Shown here piece after piece: positions 31,534-47,025 of a DNA stretch of 64,000 nucleotides (the first letter of the stretch is position 1; every line of letters begins with the position of its first letter). The position numbers were made by a program, and so were the translations under genes. The notes under the pieces are model-generated. The model did no database searches. It was not told the origin of the DNA and was given only the letters and a program-made list of their open reading frames with translations. The DNA comes from Basidiobolus meristosporus CBS 931.73 (taxonomy: Eukaryota; Fungi; Basidiobolomycota), in the NCBI GenBank assembly GCA_002104905.1, contig MCFE01000068.1:1-64000 (forward strand), in the 5' to 3' direction.

Positions 31534-34080
31534 TTAGTCTGCATCCTCGTTACGCAGGATACTCCTGAAGTTAAACGGAGTGTATTTGTATCCGGTGCCT
31601 GCGTAGAATTTGTTGTTGAATTCCACCCAGTGCAAACGCAGGGCGTGCAGGAATGCCGACAACCCCTCCATCACCATTAGGATGCTCACCGTCAACGCAA
31701 ACCACACTGCGAAGCCTGCCCAGATCCCAATGATGTTGATCGGGAAAGCCAGGCCGAGAACGATTTTGAGGGTCATATCCCAGAGCACACTTGACAGCTG
31801 CGCGTGTGCCAGCGACAACGCCCACAGACGTAGATAGGATGCGGTGTTGGAGATACAACCCAAGCAGAATTCAATCGTGTGGATCACTTGATGAATCATG
31901 ATATCGCCGAATTCAAACTCCTCCTCGTCTTGGGCTTCTTCGGTGGATTGGACGATTTCGTGGTCGTTCTTGCTGTCTTCTGGGATTCGGCCTGGATCCT
32001 TGGATCCCTCCGGGTTCTCGTGGTTTGGTTTGAGCTTGTCCTCGTCAGAACTCAGCCCGGTTTCCTCGGAGTTCACCAATATCTCGGCTGGAGCGCTCCT
32101 GTCCTTTTTGCTGTGCTTGTATTTCAGGATGAATGGCTTGGTCAACAGCATCCACGGGATGCATACGACTGCGATGAATATCAGCACTAGCTGGATGGTG
32201 CCCTGACCTGAATACAGCTGATCTTTGGGACTCACACTGCCAGGGCTTAGGAACATGTAAATCAGCATGTTGAGTAAGCTTGGGGGGCTGATCGGCTGGT
32301 TGTTCCAGTTGATCAGCCATTTGTATATTATGCAGATGCAGAGATATCCGAAGATGCACTCCATGAACAGGATCTGAGGGAGGAACTCTGCCCAGATCGC
32401 GTAGCCATGACGGAAATGGACGTGGTTGTAAATGGTTAGGATAATCCCCACCGACATTTGGATCACTCCCAAGATGACCGACATCTTCATCTTGTAGGAG
32501 TTCGTGAAGATCAAGTAGTTGTCCGTTCCATGCCACGCGGAATCCAAGCCAAACGGATAAACCCCAACCGGCCTAGCATCTATGGACTGGCCATTCTGGG
32601 TCGCCGCCGGCCAAGCCCACCCTGAAGGGAATATGGCGAGGGAGCGAGAAAACAGGTCGTTGTAGATGAGTCCGGTGAATATCGAGAAGAGCCCCATAAG
32701 CAGAATGATGTATCTGCCGTTGAACATCATGGCGAATATCTCCCCGCCGTTATATCTGGCCAGCGATTTTTCCTTTAGCACCAGCCATAGGGCGAACGCA
32801 GTCATCAGGACTCCATGGCCCAGATCGCCAAACATCACCGCGAACAGGAAAGGAAAGGTGATCACAGTAAAGAGGCCAGGGTTCACCTCCTGGTACTTGG
32901 CCACGCCATAGGCATCCACGATGTTCTGAAATCCTTGGCTGAACTTGTTGGTACGGTGGAATGTAGGGGGTTCTCGTTTTGTCTGCAGCTGAGTCAGGAT
33001 TGGGTATACGTGCGATCCGGTGCTTTCGGCTGCTTCACGAAGGGAGAGTTGAGCGGAGGGGATGTCGTTCGTGGGACACCAACCCTCGGCTATGAGACAG
33101 CGCCGGTTCTGGTCATAGTTGAACAGATTCATGACGTGATAAATCGCCTTCTCCTTTTTCACCAGCGTCATCCATTCCGACAAATTCCTCGCGATCAGCT
33201 CCAGTTCGGAGCGCCTGGTCTGGTTGGTGTTTTCGAGGATGTTCCGGAGGTCACTTAGCCTGGATTCGATGTCCCGGATCTTCAGGCGTCTCTGCTCGGG
33301 ATTTATGTCGATGGGGTAAAGCGAGGCACCCATGGCCTCGGCGATCTTCCGGATTTTGCTGAGGATTTCCGAGCCGTGTGCGTAGATTACGAACGTCGAC
33401 TTTTCGAGTTGATCCCCGCTTTGCCAGTCCGTCAATGGCTCCGGTATTTCGGATTGATACATGTACAGGTTGCCACGCAGTGACCTCCAAAGAACCCTCT
33501 CGAAGACGTTGATCTTGTTGCGCGGGATGGTTCCCGCCACGAAACCTACAGATGAGACGCTCTGGTTCAATTCGGTCTTGCCCGTCTCAACGTCCGAATC
33601 GGGCTGATCTTGTGCTGGAGCCGGGCACTGAAGAGACCCTATATCTTGGATATTCGCCGAGCCTTCCAGCACATACTTATTCTCGATCAGCTCCTGGTGC
33701 TGCCGCTGCAGGGCGCGGTAGGAGTCGTTGAAGTTGGAAAGTTTGTCCTCGTGTTCACTCAGCTGCTCGGCCAGATCATGGATGTCCCTCCCGGTGATGG
33801 GCTGGTTAGTCCCGGTGCTGTCCGCGTTCATATGGGGGATTTTGATGTTGGACGATTCGCACTGCTCGCTAAAGTTTCGGAGCTGGCGTTCGATATCATT
33901 CAAGCGTCTTATTTCATCACTGAACGACCTTTGGAAGAAGCTAAGGTCTGGGTTTAGATCCCGGAACTGGATGAGGCCACGCTCTCCTAGGTGTGCCACT
34001 GTGGAATGAGAGATCTCGGTTGGGATGAAGAGCTGCACGAGAGACATCTCTTCCGAACGGAACAATGTGGATCGAGCCAT
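31534..34080 (-). CDS. VPH1: V-type ATPase V0 subunit a (848 aa, intronless)
   Basis: FRSEEMSLVQL, FRDLN, PPTFHRTNKF, MFGDLGHG, SNTASYLRLWALSLAH (essential Arg), LRLHWVEF. Confidence 0.97.
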   Translation of the reverse strand: MARSTLFRSEEMSLVQLFIPTEISHSTVAHLGERGLIQFRDLNPDLSFFQRSFSDEIRRLNDIERQLRNFSEQCESSNIKIPHMNADSTGTNQPITGRDIHDLAEQLSEHEDKLSNFNDSYRALQRQHQELIENKYVLEGSANIQDIGSLQCPAPAQDQPDSDVETGKTELNQSVSSVGFVAGTIPRNKINVFERVLWRSLRGNLYMYQSEIPEPLTDWQSGDQLEKSTFVIYAHGSEILSKIRKIAEAMGASLYPIDINPEQRRLKIRDIESRLSDLRNILENTNQTRRSELELIARNLSEWMTLVKKEKAIYHVMNLFNYDQNRRCLIAEGWCPTNDIPSAQLSLREAAESTGSHVYPILTQLQTKREPPTFHRTNKFSQGFQNIVDAYGVAKYQEVNPGLFTVITFPFLFAVMFGDLGHGVLMTAFALWLVLKEKSLARYNGGEIFAMMFNGRYIILLMGLFSIFTGLIYNDLFSRSLAIFPSGWAWPAATQNGQSIDARPVGVYPFGLDSAWHGTDNYLIFTNSYKMKMSVILGVIQMSVGIILTIYNHVHFRHGYAIWAEFLPQILFMECIFGYLCICIIYKWLINWNNQPISPPSLLNMLIYMFLSPGSVSPKDQLYSGQGTIQLVLIFIAVVCIPWMLLTKPFILKYKHSKKDRSAPAEILVNSEETGLSSDEDKLKPNHENPEGSKDPGRIPEDSKNDHEIVQSTEEAQDEEEFEFGDIMIHQVIHTIEFCLGCISNTASYLRLWALSLAHAQLSSVLWDMTLKIVLGLAFPINIIGIWAGFAVWFALTVSILMVMEGLSAFLHALRLHWVEFNNKFYAGTGYKYTPFNFRSILRNEDAD

Positions 34081-34854
34081 AGCGTCGGAGAGGCTCGGAA
34101 AGAAACCGACTAGGTAAAATCGAATAGGAGTTAGTGAGTCGAAAGGTGAGTAATGTCCCGCTTCCTATGCATCAAACGAGGAGGAGGAGGAGGTCAAAAG
34201 GACAGTGTAAGAGAGAGAGAGGGAGGGAGGAAGAAAGATCCAAAGGTATATGATGAATCCTAGTTTGACTGCTGTTTCTGATATCGCGAGGCGAAGGCCC
34301 TGGGTTTTATATTTATTGGGATTGGATATCATATGATACGGACCTAACGCATCCTCTAACAATGGCCTGAGACAGATGGTGCAAGCCGGCTATTCTAACA
34401 ATCAATGCATTACTAAATGAATACTCGCATATTCAGAGTGCGGCTGTTACCGTGCAAGAGAATGGGGGAGAGCCATCAACAATCCCATGCAGTGGATGTA
34501 TAACAATGCCGGGACTCCACCTAATGGTGCATTCCCATCAAGGTGAATGATACCCTTGACGAGGGGCAGTAGGGATGTTCGATGGATACGCCGGCTTTCC
34601 AGGTGATGTGTGACACACCGAACTTCCATCCGGAATGCCAACCCAACCACTCCTCGATCATGTATGAAACTGGCCGAGAATCATCCCAAACCTCTTGAAG
34701 GCCAAACTTAGGGTTAGGATGACTTGCCAACCTTAATCCCACCCCGATGGATATGCATTCCAACTTATCATGAAACGGTCAACGGGCAGTTTGCTTTGTC
34801 GAGCTACTGAGCAATCATGCAGCTTCCGAAGTATCCGGACGAGGCCAGTCAACC

Positions 34855-34894
34855 CCCATCCCCATTCCCATCCTCATCCTCATCCTCATCCTCA
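34855..34894. repeat. Hexamer (CCCATY/CTCATC)n simple repeat
   Basis: cccatccccattcccatcctcatcctcatcctcatcctca. Confidence 0.85.
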
Positions 34895-35204
34895 GTAGAT
34901 AATCGACAATGGATGCGCAGGTAAACGTGCAACCGCAGGTCGATCGGCTGCACATGATCCAGAGCAAGCAAGAGGTTAGACCCGGCTGCAGTCTGATTAA
35001 CAATAGAGTGATTTATCAACTTTTGGGATATCGAATGTACAATACTACGTAGCAATTGTGAGGTTGATCAATACACATTCTGGAGAACCTAAAATCGGAT
35101 TAATCTAATATGGGAATATCATGCCCGCGAAACAAAATGTGGTGGTTGTAGGGCTGGTAGCAAAGGACTATTAGGCGGAGTATTAATTTCGGTGGGTCGT
35201 GGGC

Positions 35205-38200
35205 TCATGTTCGCTTCCAGGTCTCTTCCCCAAGGCACCCCCTTTCGTGGCGCTGCTTTCTAATGATATCTAGTTGCTCCTGGTGCAACGCGGCGTTTTT
35301 CTCTAACCTTTGCTTCGTCTTGCCTTTGATCTCGACCAAGGTTTTGTTCAGGTTGGATGCGTTGCGAAGTTGCTTATCCTTCTGCTGCTTCTCTCGCTTG
35401 TTGTGGCGAGCAATCACCTTCTCCTGGTTCTTGCGGAACCCGGCGGCAATCGGAAGGTAAAGGGACTCGATCCTTTGCTCGATGGCGTTCCGCTTGAGAA
35501 CCGAGTCCGGTGACGAGCTATGATACCACACCAGAAAGTCGTGGATATTGTGGATTTGGGCTCTCTCGTTGCCGTCGTTGTTGATCGAGTCTCCATCCCG
35601 ATAATCCGAATACGACCGGGGCGAGTAATCCTCCGACTCGGGGAAATACATGTCTGAGGTGTCCTCGACCTTCACGGAGAACAACGAGGTGAAAACCTCC
35701 TGATCGTCCAAGATCTTCGCAATCACCTTCCGGTTTTCCTCGATGGCTCCGATCACGCTGACCAGAATCTCTCCGACCAGGGTCTGAAGCTCCCGGTCCG
35801 CACGGTGGAAGATCCGTAGCAGGAACAGGATCCCGTTGGATTCTCGGAACTTGGGCTGATCAGCGATCATTTCGAACGAGAAGTTCTCTATGAACTCCGC
35901 TTGCTCCCCAGAGGCGAACTCCGCCTGAAGCACGTTGATGATGATGCCGTCTCGAATGTTGAACAGCCCCGTCGACTTCATCACCGTGCGGATTGCCGGG
36001 TTGTTTTGGCAGGCAAGGTGGTTGATCGTGCTCACGAAATGCCGGTAGATCTTCGCTGACGAGGGGACGTACTCGTCCAGGTGCTTGTACAGGTAAGTCA
36101 GATTCCTCAGCACATCAGTGGCGGTGTCATGGGCCAGGTAGGGGTTCTTGTCGAAGAATGAAAGGGTGATCTCGACCAACTGGATCTCGAACAGGTCGTT
36201 CTCGGCAACCGCGCCTCTGCTCTTGGATGTCACCGAGTTCTTCCGGGAAATATCGTAGATCATCAGCTTCTGGATGAGCGAGTCGGTGGCGGAGATCATA
36301 CGTGCGTATCCCAGCTTCTCGGGATTGGTGCGGTCTTGGAGGAACGACCGGATCCACTCGGTCCAGTTGTACTCCCACAAGATAGCCATGTTATCGTTGT
36401 GCAGGATTCGCTTGATGTCTACCAAGACCAGGCACAAAAGGTCAAGGTCCGTCACGGATTTGAGGAGATCGAGAGTCAGCCGAATGAATTCCGGGTAGAC
36501 CAGTCGATCGGTGAACTTCAAGTTATGCGTGAAGCTGTCTACACTCGACCGTGGCGACCGTATCCAGGGCCGATCGTTGCCATGCGATTTGGTGCTAGCC
36601 AAGCATTGATAATGGTTGAGCGCTACACCCAGCAAGCAACGGGTGAGCTCTGCAGTGACGGGGAATGGCGCCAGAAACAAGAACATCGCATCGAACACCC
36701 CAAGCTTGGTCATGAGGGAGCGAGTTTGCTTGATATTCGTGCTGATGAGAACACCCATCATTTTAAGAACAGTCACCCGCAGCTTCTCATCTTGGAACTC
36801 CAAGAAGGAAAGCAGCAGCGTCAACCCGCCGATGTTTCGGATCATCTCAACGAAAACAAGGCTATTCGACATGTGCTTGAATACAAGGCCCAACACCTCG
36901 CTCTTCATGTCCAACGACTGCTTCTTCCCGTAGGATAGGAAGTTGATCAATCTTGCCACTTCGTCTGTGGCCATATCGGTCATCATCTTGTCCATGATTC
37001 GCAACGCAAATTGGCGCAGAGGCGAAGGCAGAACATGCAGCAGCTCGAACAGGATGTCTAAGCCACCCATGCTTCTCCAATGCCTCATGTTCTCCGGCAC
37101 GTCAATCAGAAGATCCACTAGCAGTCGAAGTACCGGAAGCTGGACTTGCTCGGGACAATTCATCAGCAGGTCCGAAATCAACAACAGGCAGTCGGAATTG
37201 TTGAAGATGAACTGCTCCTTCTTCCTGGCTCCATCACTGGCCAACTCGAAAAGGGTTTCGAAGTGGTTCCAAGTCAGTTCGCTTGTATAATTGCGAAGGA
37301 TGGAGTACAACACGTTGAATCCCTTTTGCTCGGTGAATCGCTGGAGAAGGTGAGGAGACTTGCACAGCAGGTTTGAGATGATGCGTAAACCAACTAGCTG
37401 CTGCTCCGATCCCATCTCCAAGAAGGGGAAGCAAAGCTGGATGCCACCTACATCAGTGATCACGTCCTTGATGGATTTGGTGGAATGGACTGCGCACCCG
37501 CCCTCGACCTTACACACTATCTTCGTGGGGTCCGGGGATTCCCAGATTTGCTTCATCAGGCTGATATCCGAAGTCGAGGACACGGAGATCTTGTCGGTCT
37601 CGGTGGTTCCGTTTTCGTTGGCATAGATCTGGGGGATTATCGCGACCACCTCTTTGTTCTCGATCCCCTGAGCACGGAAACCTTTGGTGTAACGCGGGCC
37701 TTGGTTGTAGATGCGCTGCGTAACCGACTCATCCCAAAGCCCCTCCATGATGTGGATTGACCCGATCTGGCCACAGAAGTACCCTTTGTGCAGCTTATCC
37801 TGCTCGTTGATACCATCGCCGTAGAGGTGAGATGACAGGGAGGCTCGAGGCTTGACCCCCTTTCTTCCTACCACCAGAACAAACGGCTTCTCCTTTCCAG
37901 TGATCCTGGGATAGTTGAAAGTTCCATAGGATTGGACGAGGTATCCATCGACAAAAAGAGAGGTTCCGTCCCTCGAGTGGACAAACGCGATATGCCGCCA
38001 AACATCGGTTTCGGAGAAGTCGAACCCATCAAATACAAAGTCCTCCGCAGGTAAGGGCCATTGCTGCGTTCTTACGCATAGGCAGTACCGTGCTGACTTA
38101 TCCAGAGCCTTGAAGTAGAGCTCAAAGGTGGTGTTGGGTGCGGAGGGGTCCTCGTAGCAAATGAGTCCAGTCTCCGCATGGAAAAACTCGGTGATCTTTA

Positions 38201-41200
38201 CCCAGCAACTGAAGGTGTACCCAGTCTTCGCACTGGGGAAACGCTCCAACGGGTGCGTACGCAGGCAGCCATCGTACCCGTTGAAGTTGAAAAACCAACA
38301 TGGATCCAGCCTGCGGGAAATACGCTCGATAGCATGCATCATCTGGCGCTGGATTTCATCCATGAACAACGGGTCAAATCGAAACTCGAACTCGTCATGA
38401 TTACGGATGGCAAATGACCCCGAATCGAGCGTGGTAATTGTCCGCTGGTTTGCGCTATCAATGAATCTCCCAAGCATCCCAAATGGATCGAACGCGACAT
38501 TGAAGAGCAAAGTGACCTCGCTGGAAGTGATATTAAAGGAGCCTAAAGCCGGAATCAGGTCTATGTATGGCGGGGGTTCGAGTGCAGACTCGGAGCCCGG
38601 CTCATTGTCCCCTTTCTTCCTGTATCTACCCTTGGAAAAGAGAAGCTCAAGAACATACTGCAAAGCATGGCCTGCGCATAGAAGCTCTTGGTTTCTAGGG
38701 TTGATGCGCATCATATGCTGTAGAAGATTGAAAAGATAGTGGGAATATGCCTCCGTGTCCTGCTCAGCCAGTCGAGTCATGAATTTCACAACCATCATGG
38801 CCGCCTCTGCATCACGAAAAGTGATCTCGCAAAAGTTCCGAACTGGGCTCTTGTCACGTACAATGGAGGTATCCAGCGTGCTTTCTGCCTCACCGTTAGT
38901 TGCAGAGTGAACGGTACTGGAGTTTCGGACGGAGGGGAGGTGGGGCTCTTTCGATTGTTCTTTCTCGTTGAAGGCTTTCTTCGGGTAAGAGCCCGCTAGT
39001 CCGGGGCTTGGACATTGGTTCCGAAGCTGCCGTGCTGAGTCAATGCTCAGCACGGTACGCGAATCCTCCGAGTACACCTTGGCCATCTTAGTCCCAGGCA
39101 GATTCGAATCACGCCTATCGCGATTCAGAGAGGATATGTCACTCTCCGACAGATTGCTGTGAGGGAAGCCATTCGCGAAGAGGCTATTGTTGTCGGGAAT
39201 GTCTGTTCTTGACTGATCGCTGTAGATGCTCGATGGTCTAGAAAGTATGGGACCAACACTATGAGTGCTTTGTTTACTTCTTTGCCGCTTGTGTCCGCTG
39301 CTATCAACACTCTTTTTGTGTAAGCTCCCTCGGCGCTGCTGTACTAATGGCAATGGACACTCGTACAAGAGTGTAGGAACAACCAAATCGGCTACGTAAG
39401 GGAGAACGCAATTGCTAATAGCGAAGGGCTCCTCATCATCAGCATTGGTTTTGAGTGCTTGGAAGACACTACCGAAAGTGGCCACCTCGAGGATGATCTG
39501 ACAACAAGTTTGATCAAGAGGGATTTGTGAAGACAAGACTACTTCTAGGAAGCCTGCGTATCCAAACGTCTCCCCCAGGAAATTCTGTTTACTTTCAAAT
39601 CCAGTGAAGAAGTCCCCGATAGCCACCAACGCAGCCTTGGCAACCTCAGTTTCATCGGTGTGGCTCATGATGGCTAGGAGCACCTCCATCCCTCCGTGCT
39701 CACCAAAATGCCGTTTGGCAGACTCGCTCTTTCGAAAAACCGAGGAAACCACTTTACATAACTTGATTTGCAGCCAAGCATGGCCAGACCGCAAAGAACT
39801 ACCCCGAGGAGCCGGGATTTTCTCGAGAATGCTAGAGTCGTACTCATTCTCACATGTTCTTGCATCGAAAGCCATAGAGTCGGTGACCTCGATGGGGGAT
39901 AGAACAGATTTGAGTAATTTGATCAGCCATTTTATACTCTCTGGCCACTCGACACAGCAGATCAAGCAATCGCGCATCAGCCAGAGTCCGGTGTCAGCAA
40001 GGATCTTTTCACCCTCCTCGACCTCCTGAGCGAGCAACTCGTACATCTCTGCGTCAAGATCCTCGGTAGCGTATCTCGTCAATAGATAAGGACAGATGCT
40101 TGGAAAGATAATTGAATCATTCAATGTTTCAAAGCCTTGCATCATGTCGAAAAGCTCCAGGTTCCGGCTAATAGCGTCGATCAGTAGCCCAACAATTTGA
40201 GAGAGCAACATGTACTGCTCTCGAATCACAACCAAGGTGTGTTGGATATCCCGGGTGTGGGACTCGGGGCTCGCTGGAGGGTTACTCGAATAGTTAAGAG
40301 CTTTCAACTGTGAGTGGGCTGGGCTCTCTGCGGTATGATATATACGGCGTAGCAACTGCAGATAAATATTCAAATACTTCTCATCAATAGCATGGAGCCG
40401 GCAGACCAGATCCGACAGCAAGCGTGACACGCTTTTCAGAATCATGTTGACTAGAATGCTGCGAGTGGGAAGTTCTAGCTCCAGAAGAAGTCGAGAGTAT
40501 TCCTAGAACATCGTCATGAATTGGTGGTTCTTTCTAGAAAGGGTGAAATTGCTTGGCACTCACATGAAGGACGTAATCGCAGTGATCGCTGAGCATTACT
40601 GATATATACTCCAGCAGCTTTATCACGGTATTCAAATACTGGTACAAAGGATCCTCCTCGACCGTCGTCTCTCTTAACTTCGGATCCACGGCAAGATATG
40701 GACGAACTTGGCTCGATTCCTCAGGCAACCCCACCTCTTGTTGGAGCGACTATAAGTTCAATCAGTATATTATTAGGGAAAGATTTACGCATGCATAATT
40801 GATAATTACTAGCGCTTGGACAATGTCGTCTCTGGAAGACCCGGATGAAGCTGCAGAGCTAAGAAGACCCATCAATATGTCGACACCTCCAATTTTCCAT
40901 GCCACGGCAGCATTCAATGGGTTCAGCGAAATGAGGTCCTGGCGCAAACAGTCAGACCACCTGTTGGCTAAGATTCGGAATATGTGAACCACCGACCTGG
41001 ATACATGCCACTGCATGTTTTCTGACTTCAATTCGGGCTGAGGAGACAGCGGCTCTAAACATTAATTCGAAAGCATCATGGTTGCCAACAATCTATTAGG
41101 TTAAGCATCGAATCATAGAAAGGTTAGCTTTCATGCGGCGGCTTCAGAATATCGAGATAACGTACCAAATCTTGATTCCCATCCAATGCTATCGTAAACA

Positions 41201-43245
41201 AGATATTGAAGCAGTCCTAGATATCCAAAAGCAATGAGTGATCCATCGACACCAACTGCCATACCACCAACACTCACTTGCAAGAATACTTCATTTTCAC
41301 CAACGCCGCCACCAATTATCTCGTCAAATACTTTCAGCATCACGGAATATCCGTCCATTCTTCGAAATTCCAATTGGTTCTCAACATTCCGAAATAATAG
41401 TTTACATATGGTCTCGACAACATCGAGCTTGGAGACGAGATTTAACTGAATCGTCGGATGAGAAGCAGCCTCATTAAGTATAGACGTCAATGAACGCAAC
41501 GCGCCTTGGACGCGCATGAACTCCTGCAAATGATAGATCAGTATGAGCAACAAGAGAAACGAGATGGGCCCTCCAACCTTAAGTATGTCCGAGTTGTTAT
41601 TCGCGTCTCCAAGATCATTAAGCGTTTCTGGCAAATGGAAATGGTTAAAGCGCTGGCATGTGGCACCCAGTTTGCAAGATCTTCTTACCAACGCTTCTTT
41701 TATCAACCTCTCTGTTGGTTGTCTCGGTGGTGGCGTCTGAAACGCATTCTATATCTATATGCGTGCACTTTGTTAGGTAGCCAAACTTGGACAGTATTGC
41801 TAGGTGAATGTAGATTTACCATGCTTGGTGGAGAGCCGCTGCATCAATGTGCTCACATCCTCGTTAGATGGTATGAATGCCCTATCGGAACAAATAAGTG
41901 TCTAGAACAAACGCGTAACGGTCTGGAACCAACGATACATACAACAGTGGGGCTTGGGTCGAGCGTTCTTGACTGCCTACTTCGGTGTCTTTGAGTTTAC
42001 ACACTATATTAGCATCCAAAAGCGCGAAACTACACACCGAATAATAAATACCGTCTGAGGGATTACTACTCATTGTGTTGAAAACTCTACCGAGCTCGGA
42101 GATCACAAGTTCCCGGACATCTGAAACAAGATGGGACACCTTTTCTCCCAAGACCCCACCAAAGAAATTGGTGACCTCGGCAGGCATCTGGTCCAACTTG
42201 GCATTGATCTCGTCCATCGAGTCCGAAAGACCCATGTTCTATTGAAAATAGTTAAGTGGCTGCGCTTGGAAAAGTGGCGACGGGGTCATTACCGCTAAGG
42301 ATTCCCCTCGCACTTCAAGCAGATGCTTCATGGTCTTCACAATCTCTGTGGTTAACTCTGGGTCACCCTCAAGTAGTAATCTCAGGATTTTTTTGAACCC
42401 CTGATGCCGACCTGTAGAGCTCTTGTTAGTCGACCGGTTGCTCTTCGTCCCTCCCCCAATGCTCCTGTATTTACCGATCTCTATTTTGTTTCCATCGGTT
42501 TCGCCTAGTGTGCTAATTACTCGTAAAGCCAATTTCTTCGTTTCGGTTGTATTCAACCTTTCTAGCAGCAGTAAAATGCGATTGATCAAGTTGGGTGTGT
42601 TGGCAACTACTTGACGGTACTTCTCTTCCTGGGTTATGAATTAGCTCTGAGCGGAGAGTAGCCGAAGACACACAACCATACGAACCTTTAAAATTAGCTC
42701 GGCCACATTCAGCGCCTTATTAATGAGCTCAGCCAGCCAAGCAACATTTTGGTTGATATTCTCTTTGGTGACCTCGCTTTGTTACTGGTGTAAGTGGATG
42801 AGGAGAGCGAAGGTAACAATGGCCCCAATAACTAACCGATCAATTATGTTGAGCAGATTCATTAATACTTCGGTGCAATCGCCGTAGAGTTTGTCGAGTG
42901 AGAAGTCTTGGGTTAGCATTGCACCGGAAGCGTTCCACTCATTATAAGCGTATTGGAAGGAATCTAAGAAGGCGTTGAGTTTCTGAACCATTAATTCCAT
43001 GTCACTAGAAATTGTTTGAATGCGGTGTAAGATAGTCTATCATGAAGAGGCAGGGAATAGAAGAGGTTGAATATCCTGCCACGTTCCATCGCAGATATGC
43101 TAATGACCGAAACAAGGTAGCAACATGAAGTCGTGAATAAGGTTTTACTCAACTCTTTGTCAGAAACCGATTTGTACTCCTCCCAGCATTTCTGAATTCT
43201 ACGATATGTTTTTCGCATCGCCCATTTCTGGCGGACGGAGTTCAT
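35205..43245 (-). CDS. Very large neurobeachin/LRBA-like ARM + concanavalin-A-like + DUF4704-like scaffold that ends without PH-BEACH-WD40; intron-rich 5' part and one ~5.2-kb terminal exon
   Basis: ConA-like GYTFSCWVK...WRHIAFVH...LFVDG...GQIGSIHI...IYNQGP; DUF4704-like SIKDVITDVGGIQLCFPFLE; repeated GG-x-x-hydrophobic ARM-type motifs; joining the upstream exons (40500-43245) into one gene is inferred from strand and splice signals. Confidence 0.72.
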
Positions 43246-43796
43246 TTTCCCACAATTATATACTTAAGATTAATTGGTAAGTTGTTGAGGCGAGAGGGGG
43301 TACAACACTCAGTACACTAAGCACGTGGGTGATGACAGGTTGTTTTCGTAGTTGGAAATGATAATCTGATGAAAGCGAGTCTGGTCGAAAATTGGGCGTG
43401 TTCTTCTAGCATTCGTCGGCTACTCAGGTGCAGTGAAACAGTATGTAGTCGCCACGATAACACAACGAGACAATACACGGTTCTTCCAGGTATTCGAACG
43501 AATTTGAAAAATAGGGAAGGGAATCTAGGTTATTCAAGATCAAAAATAGCCAAGTATGAGCGTCTCGTGCCAAGCCGGCAATATAGAAAAGGGGTTGGTA
43601 AATAGTAAAGGGGAATAAAAAACAGAGATAAATCAAATGTGTAAATACGGCTAACCTAAATCTACGCTAACTCTTTCCATGATATTAGGATTGCCTCGCT
43701 AACACGTGATAATGATCCTTGTTTTTTCTTGGCTTTTTTGTTGATGACAGTTTGCTGTTTTACGGCATCTTCCTTCCGATAGACACAACATACATC

Positions 43797-44609
43797 ATGG
43801 GTCTACTAACCATCCTAAAAAAGAATAGACAGAAGGAAAAGGAGATGCGTCTGCTGATGCTGTAAAGTAAACCTTCGATTTTCCGCTTTCCGACCCATGC
43901 TTACGAAGTGACCATCACATTTGCCTTTATTGACACTAGTGGTTTAGATAATGCCGGCAAGACGACCATTCTCAAAAGAATTAATGGGGAGGATATAAAC
44001 ACGATCTCTCCCACTTTGGGTTTTAATATTAAGACTCTAGAGCACAGTGGGTACCGTAACGTGTGATTTTGCTCAAATGGAGAATGGAGCTGACCCGACT
44101 CTCCTTAGATTCAAATTAAACATATGGGATGTTGGAGGCCAAAAGTCCATCCGTTCGTACTGGCGTAACTACTTCGAACAAACTGATGGCTTGGTGTGGG
44201 TGGTCGACTCTGCCGATAGATTACGTATGCAAGATTGTAAGAACGAACTAGCTGCTTTGTTAAAGGAAGAGGCATGGAGATCTATGTACATGTAGCTGCT
44301 ATAGTTGTAACACCGTACTAACTTCCATATAGAGGCTTTCCGGTGCCACTCTACTCGTACTTGCCAACAAGCAAGACCTTGCTGGTGCTTTGACAGAACA
44401 AGAGATCAGAGAGGTAGGAACGTGATCCCTGAGATTCATCATATATCACTAGATTCACATGATCACTTCTGCAGGCCCTGGATTTAGACTCTATCCAGGC
44501 ACATCATTGGGCCATTTTAACCTGTAGTGCGGTAACTGGCAAAAACCTTCTGACAGGAATGGATTGGATTGTGAGCGATATAGCCTCCCGCATATACCTT
44601 TTCGAATGA
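43797..44609 (+). CDS. ARL2: ADP-ribosylation factor-like GTPase 2 (Arl2/Cin4/Alp41), multi-exon
   Basis: [52 protein letters not shown]. Confidence 0.96.

Positions 44610-45347: not shown

Positions 45348-47025
<1,678 letters not shown>

Follow-up and report, generated by a model that had tools for sequence, protein, structure and literature searches.

Typical BEACH proteins (NBEA, LRBA, NBEAL1/2, WDFY3/Alfy and LYST; Bph1 in yeast) are giant cytosolic proteins in which a ConA-like/LamG domain lies within an armadillo (ARM)/HEAT solenoid, the corresponding Pfam families following the order Arm_4, Laminin_G_3, DUF4704. All typical human BEACH domain-containing proteins (BDCPs) combine the solenoid and the ConA-like domain with a PH-BEACH-WD40 assembly (Pankiv et al. 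2024, PMC11554844). In BDCPs, the cytosolic tail of CTLA4 is bound by the PH-BEACH assembly and not by the N-terminal fragment, and the small BDCPs of the NSMAF/FAN type consist of PH/GRAM-PH-BEACH-WD40, with no solenoid or ConA domain (PMC11554844). Drawn from the same module superfamily, these small proteins demonstrate that one half of a BDCP may occur without the other. We describe here the gene K493DRAFT_334919 of the fungus Basidiobolus meristosporus CBS 931.73, a mirror image of NSMAF that has the solenoid and ConA parts only. It is located on the minus strand of the window analysed (the whole stretch of 64,000 nucleotides, positions 1 to 64,000 of contig MCFE01000068.1), extends from 43245 to 35205 and comprises 15 exons and about 2367 codons.

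The product of K493DRAFT_334919 shares with typical BEACH proteins its giant size, a predicted cytosolic location, and the embedded ConA-like domain with the same order of Pfam families. Unlike them, it has no DUF4800, PH-like domain, BEACH domain or WD40 propeller, and its C-terminus consists of a solenoid segment specific to the family, followed by a 100-residue basic helix. We consider it probable that this is an intact gene of expressed type, belonging to a BEACH-less family homologous to the solenoid–ConA-like–solenoid module of BDCPs such as NBEA, LRBA, Alfy and Bph1.

Domain composition and native end of the gene

A word-based protein search matched the product to the database entry K493DRAFT_334919 (P0001, 2335 residues, 'hypothetical protein'). 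All protein analyses were conducted on P0001, and an additional first exon, absent from this entry, was considered by reference alone. Family alignments served as input for two AlphaFold models, one for residues 1250–2335 (predicted local distance difference test (pLDDT) 82, predicted TM-score (pTM) 0.70) and one for residues 1–1200 (model mf550617385e7; pLDDT 68.6, pTM 0.69). Together they contain solenoid, a single beta-sandwich and a terminal helix, and no other fold. The features of the gene are as follows (residues of P0001 in brackets).

35205..43245, minus strand: whole gene, 15 exons, from the exon map of P0001 and the extra first exon; the deposited K493DRAFT_334919 begins at 43000
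43154..43245, minus strand: exon 1, absent from the deposited model, encoding a conserved basic N-terminal helix (MNSVRQKWAMRKTYRRIQKCWEEYK...); located by tblastn with the N-terminus of B. ranarum
39333..43004, minus strand: N-terminal all-helical ARM/HEAT-type solenoid with several disordered loops (1–960), exons 2–14 and the start of exon 15; AlphaFold and Foldseek
38850..39329, minus strand: disordered Ser/Pro-rich linker of 160 residues (962–1121), with pLDDT <35 and no secondary structure
38313..38849, minus strand: Arm_4-like helical repeats running into the ConA-like domain (1122–1300); Pfam and AlphaFold helices
37638..38297, minus strand: ConA-like/laminin-G beta-sandwich (1306–1525); Pfam Laminin_G_3, AlphaFold strands and Foldseek
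35676..37448, minus strand: regular armadillo-repeat solenoid with the DUF4704 match (1589–2179); Pfam and profile search, pLDDT mostly >90
35556..35666, minus strand: acidic disordered linker (2183–2219), variable in length among relatives; pLDDT <50
35211..35510, minus strand: C-terminal basic helix of 100 residues (2235–2334), conserved to the last residues; AlphaFold pLDDT 87–96 and alignment
35205..35207, minus strand: native stop codon; ends of relatives and comparison with B. ranarum DNA

The greater part of these features is encoded by an unbroken minus-strand open reading frame (ORF) of 1746 codons (35205..40445), with the C-terminal end ...HERGCLGEETWKRT*. DUF4704, the Pfam 'Neurobeachin/BDCP alpha-solenoid region', is matched with E 2.1e-18 in this ORF and with 65.8 bits in P0001 (cut-off 22.9). 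Laminin_G_3 is matched above its cut-off as well (32 bits, cut-off 27.6; E 1.2e-7, residues 734–857 of the ORF, about nucleotides 37875–38246). Arm_4 stays below its cut-off of 27 in P0001 (25.0 bits) and reaches 30.2 bits in the relative P0041. The beta-sandwich is matched by Foldseek to pentraxin, to the LamG modules of PAPP-A and to the LNS domain of neurexin, and the solenoids to ODAD2, Vac8 and beta-catenin. The N-terminal solenoid matches beta-catenin and other ARM solenoids, with weak Pfam ARM_ARMC5/Arm matches in relatives. A profile of the family strongly matches designed ARM proteins, ODAD2, importin-alpha and Vac8; its most conserved block (residues 2060–2089) is inside the armadillo solenoid. 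The nearest fold neighbours in the Atlas are Ascomycota 'Alfy-like' clusters with Arm_4 and Laminin_G_3, and the feature-based neighbours are DUF4704/Neurobeachin/LRBA clusters. The original prediction, made from the letters of the window, had placed ARM-like repeats, a ConA/laminin-G domain at about 37700–38230 and a DUF4704-like segment in this gene, and all three are borne out by these matches and models. It had also described the end of the protein as a charged coiled coil. A long charged helix is present there (38% charged residues, net basic); the coiled-coil label is insecure, because the heptad pattern is weak.

The PH, BEACH and WD40 domains that define BDCPs at their C-terminus are missing. 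Beach (Pfam PF02138) gives no match at E ≤ 0.1 in the ORF or in P0001, and neither AlphaFold model contains a BEACH fold. PH_BEACH (PF14844) is not matched even at E ≤ 10 in the C-terminal 390 residues of seven members, the solved PH-BEACH chains were not retrieved when the family profile was searched against the PDB, and after the LamG domain the model is purely helical, with no PH-like fold. WD40 has no Pfam match in the protein, which ends in a single helix where BDCPs have their propeller, and the gap of 1124 bp to the next gene, VPH1, is too small to encode one. The ConA-like/LamG domain within an alpha-solenoid (Arm_4–Laminin_G_3–DUF4704) is the feature of BDCPs that is present. Thus, of the four families for which a HMMER search had been proposed, Laminin_G_3 and DUF4704 were found, and PH_BEACH and Beach were not. 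As none of the C-terminal hallmarks of BDCPs is present, K493DRAFT_334919 should be classified outside the BDCPs, as a relative of their N-terminal module without BEACH.

The end of the protein is shared by its relatives. Proteins of B. ranarum, two Piromyces species and several environmental sequences align to residue 2331–2335 of P0001 and then end within 0–18 residues. An exhaustive HMMER (phmmer) scan was made of 1.84 billion representative proteins with residues 1250–2335 as the query (E ≤ 0.001); most of its long matches are collinear with P0001 from about residue 5 to about residue 2333, and most full-length members have 0–20 residues left beyond the alignment. The last 390 residues align well among the relatives, including the terminal ER..LG...W. 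The relatives with the same end include ORFs marked as complete in transcriptome assemblies (Pharyngomonas and GILJ01007613) and ORFs from Trinity transcriptomes (Pyxidicula and Stygiella).

At the nucleotide level, the stop codon (window 35205; B. ranarum contig L001, 11096) is the precise limit of similarity to B. ranarum. Beyond it, similarity returns only at 34283–34532 (250 bp, non-coding) and at the ATG of VPH1, and no conserved hidden exon between the stop and VPH1 was found in the comparison with B. ranarum DNA. The gap to VPH1 contains no Ns, and its base composition is smooth, with no break. Non-synonymous divergence (dN) between the two species is 0.03–0.2, with synonymous sites (dS) saturated, and the gene is under strong purifying selection. 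Constraint is strongest on the C-terminal helix (dN 0.026); the Ser/Pro-rich linker has the highest dN of its exon (0.205). The shared ends of the relatives, the transcriptome ORFs, the limit of similarity at the junction with B. ranarum and the constraint on dN together show that the stop codon is native and that this end has been conserved in distantly related eukaryotes. The end at 35205, like every other element reported as seen in the original prediction, is where it had been placed, and the suggested inspection of orthologues gives relatives in B. ranarum, Piromyces, Amoebozoa, Rhizaria and Discoba that end at the same point.

Extent and taxonomic distribution of the family

The exhaustive scan returned 280 relatives in total, far fewer than there are eukaryotic BEACH proteins. 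The best 150 of these were listed; taxon names were available for roughly 25 of the 280, and most environmental matches have none. Seven long matches were scanned in full with Pfam, together with the tails of every listed match of at least 1000 residues in which the alignment is followed by at least 389 further residues. Among the matches listed, no BEACH, PH_BEACH or WD40 was found in the relatives scanned in this way, and the first eight matches of the word-based search have no BEACH in their precomputed Pfam annotation. In several relatives, both Laminin_G_3 and DUF4704 exceed their cut-offs, and Arm_4 or Neurobeachin (below cut-off) is matched upstream.

The named members are found in fungi outside the Dikarya (two species of Basidiobolus, two of Piromyces, Paraglomus, Entrophospora, Mortierella, Actinomortierella and Piptocephalis), in Amoebozoa (Heterostelium and Pyxidicula), in Rhizaria (Plasmodiophora and Papus), in Discoba (Pharyngomonas and Stygiella) and in Metamonada (Paratrimastix). 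Examples are K7432_001370 of B. ranarum, BCR36DRAFT_585219 of Piromyces, PPL_09493 of Heterostelium and PBRA_004975 of Plasmodiophora. Most full-length members are collinear from end to end, including a basic N-terminal motif, the C-terminal solenoid and the terminal helix. No animal, plant or Dikarya protein is among the named matches, an absence that is provisional, as these are roughly 25 of the 280. In a FastTree phylogeny of 34 members, the fungi form one group with Amoebozoa as its neighbours, and Rhizaria and Discoba branch at a greater distance; several of the branches are long and have weak support. The tree is compatible with vertical descent.

The description of the gene as a 'BEACH-less family member' thus agrees with its Arm_4/ConA-like/DUF4704 architecture and conserved native end. 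Taking its identity and its family together, we regard it with high confidence as part of an old, separate eukaryotic family without BEACH. In the databases, members are named only 'hypothetical' or 'DUF4704 domain-containing protein', and full-text searches of the literature found no description of such a BEACH-less family.

Some relatives differ at their C-terminus. P0004, P0011, P0050 and P0052 (also P0013 and P0014) can be aligned with P0001 only as far as about residue 2091, where most of them end; they belong to Glomeromycota, Piptocephalis and Mortierella, P0052 being environmental. Either they lack the terminal helix, or their last exon may have been missed by the gene models. In Paratrimastix pyriformis (P0116), a class-3 lipase domain is predicted at residues 2056–2121, about 1000 residues past the shared region; this observation is unverified and limited to a single lineage.

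Gene model and genomic neighbourhood

When P0001 was matched exactly to the window, 14 exons were obtained between 43000 and 35208, separated by short introns (about 50–75 nucleotides), with boundaries accurate to within one codon. The B. ranarum orthologue has 32 extra N-terminal residues, which match the window at 43245–43108 in tblastn. They correspond to an additional exon with its ATG at 43245, followed by an intron of 149 nucleotides (43153..43005, GT donor at 43153 and AG acceptor at 43005) that joins in frame to 43004. The motif of this exon, ..KW....K.Y.R.QK.W.EY.., is common to the relatives P0002, P0005, P0008, P0022 and P0041. From the B. ranarum match, the in-frame GT..AG junction and the shared motif, the start at 43245 given in the original prediction is right. 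On this comparison, the deposited model K493DRAFT_334919 lacks its first exon and starts 32 residues too late; its 3' end is correct.

Downstream of the gene, the window contains two further features.

34081..35204, no strand: intergenic region of 1124 bp, comprising the 3' flank of the gene and the promoter and 5' leader of VPH1; at most an 80-codon ORF on the gene's strand
31534..34080, minus strand: V-ATPase a-subunit of the VPH1/STV1 type, a separate gene (Pfam V_ATPase_I, 1082 bits)

The gap of about 1.1 kb without BEACH motifs that had been noted between the two genes is therefore confirmed, the 80-codon ORF being the only one on that strand. The block at 34283–34532, 200–450 bp upstream of the VPH1 ATG, has non-coding, frame-independent similarity to B. 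ranarum (about 72–76% identity) and is probably the promoter or 5' leader of VPH1. A (GATGAG)n-like microsatellite is present at about 34850–34900.

Upstream, an ARL2-type Arf-like GTPase gene (about 43600–44400, plus strand; ORF piece 44047–44295) is oriented head-to-head with K493DRAFT_334919. This arrangement, with its short common upstream region, is kept in B. ranarum (L001, 1625–2435 versus 3012). The next gene, at 45688–47025 (plus strand), encodes the beta subunit of the mitochondrial F1 ATP synthase (ATP2). Its Pfam ATP-synt_VA_C match is potentially misleading; assignment of this ATP-synt_ab gene to a V-ATPase subunit was rejected. Weak Pfam V-ATPase_H_C matches within K493DRAFT_334919 itself (residues 818–868 of P0001, about 39610–39760, minus strand; 17 bits, and 22.5 in B. 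ranarum, cut-off 27.2) were likewise rejected as a link to the neighbouring V-ATPase gene. They are below threshold and within ARM-type repeats, and most likely reflect generic ARM/HEAT similarity.

The order ATP2 (F1 beta)–ARL2-like GTPase–family gene–VPH1 is common to B. meristosporus and B. ranarum, whose assembly is independent and has an identical junction between the family gene and VPH1. In Piromyces, Mortierella, Heterostelium and Plasmodiophora, the family gene does not adjoin VPH1. The family member has no BEACH gene as a neighbour in B. meristosporus or in five other genomes (these four and B. ranarum). Because the neighbourhood is restricted to the genus, the ATPase gene encodes F1 beta and no BEACH gene adjoins, there is no V-ATPase cluster and no sign of a local split. 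A functional meaning of the VPH1 neighbour is accordingly not supported. Nor is the suggestion of 'half of a split gene', at least as a local or recent event, the C-terminus being common to fungi, Amoebozoa, Rhizaria and Discoba.

Two observations concern the surroundings of other members. In Plasmodiophora (L005, 17011–18462), a PROPPIN/WD40 gene begins 240 bp past the family member (unverified and in a single lineage). On the Mortierella claussenii contig (L003, 26106–26642), a 178-residue ORF near the contig end has a Pfam match to Cas12f1-like_TNB (TnpB/Fanzor-type).

Alternative explanations and significance

The product of K493DRAFT_334919 (~2367 residues) would be a large cytosolic armadillo-type scaffold. 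It may bind partners, membranes or itself through the peptide-binding grooves of the ARM repeats, the face of the ConA-like domain and the conserved basic terminal helices. By analogy with its BEACH-bearing cousins, we tentatively propose a role as a trafficking scaffold, probably in endomembrane traffic. The family would not be able to act as a BDCP-type cargo adaptor by itself, because the PH-BEACH unit, which binds cargo tails in BDCPs, is missing.

Several points weigh against reading the family as a homologue of the BDCP module with such a role. The homology to BDCPs rests on Pfam profile matches and fold, and ARM repeats cross-match many families; the searches of the PDB by sequence and with Foldseek returned no BDCP chains. 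The C-terminal 390 residues correspond to no known family: the last 390–436 residues are matched by no Pfam family (E ≤ 10, seven members) and by no PDB sequence, and the Atlas offers no convincing neighbour for them. The function of every member is inferred only, and dimerisation through the terminal helix is a guess, its heptad periodicity being weak.

An alternative already raised in the original prediction is that the N-terminal module acts in trans with a separate PH-BEACH-WD40 protein resembling the small BDCPs of the NSMAF/FAN type, as an ancient BDCP made of two genes. The complementary half is known, since small PH-BEACH-WD40 BDCPs without solenoid or ConA domain exist (PMC11554844), and the conserved terminal helices of the family could dock a partner. 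However, no BEACH gene adjoins in the two Basidiobolus species, Piromyces, Mortierella, Heterostelium or Plasmodiophora, and we consider this explanation unlikely.

It is also improbable that the family is unrelated to BEACH proteins specifically, that is, an ARM-repeat protein of independent origin that gained a LamG domain and in which DUF4704 reflects generic armadillo similarity. The DUF4704 region strongly matches canonical ARM proteins in profile searches, no BEACH protein was found by phmmer among the scanned members of the best 150 of 280 matches, and the tail has no match to a family of BDCP type. Against this, up to four Pfam families of BDCPs occur among the family members in BDCP order (Neurobeachin, below cut-off, or Arm_4, then Laminin_G_3 and DUF4704), DUF4704 scores above the generic Arm model, and the best Atlas neighbours by features and fold are BDCP fragments. 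Canonical armadillo scaffolds (beta-catenin, importin-alpha, Vac8 and ODAD2/ARMC4) match the DUF4704 region and the N-terminal part, which are folded as regular ARM repeats, by sequence profile and by Foldseek, but they are much smaller than K493DRAFT_334919, have no embedded LamG domain and are not collinear with it outside the repeats.

An artefact might be suspected from the invariable PH-BEACH-WD40 of typical BDCPs and from the distance of only 1.1 kb between the stop and the next gene, but a misjoined assembly, an incomplete gene model, or an ordinary BEACH protein recently truncated or pseudogenised in this lineage is ruled out, to the point of being extremely improbable, by four observations (identical stop and junction in the independent B. 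ranarum assembly, the same end in other phyla and supergroups with several complete-marked transcriptome ORFs, strongest constraint on the C-terminal helix, and no Ns or composition break).

We therefore retain the reading of K493DRAFT_334919 as an intact member of a BEACH-less family related to the BDCP N-terminal module. As to its origin, the family might be the free-standing ancestor from which typical BEACH proteins arose by fusion with PH-BEACH-WD40, or a partner of equal age acting in trans with small BEACH proteins, lost in animals, Dikarya and plants; we think this rather doubtful. If true, the loss in these groups would explain why the family has never been studied.

BEACH proteins are disease-relevant sorting factors. 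To our knowledge, no function has been assigned to the large N-terminal two-thirds of these proteins. The existence of a conserved and constrained family consisting of the N-terminal module alone, in several eukaryotic supergroups, implies that this module can work alone. The family would offer a simpler system in which to find the module's binding partners, and a dictyostelid member (Heterostelium) exists. It also bears on the way in which BDCPs were assembled, which may have involved the fusion of two older proteins or, alternatively, the loss of the BEACH end.

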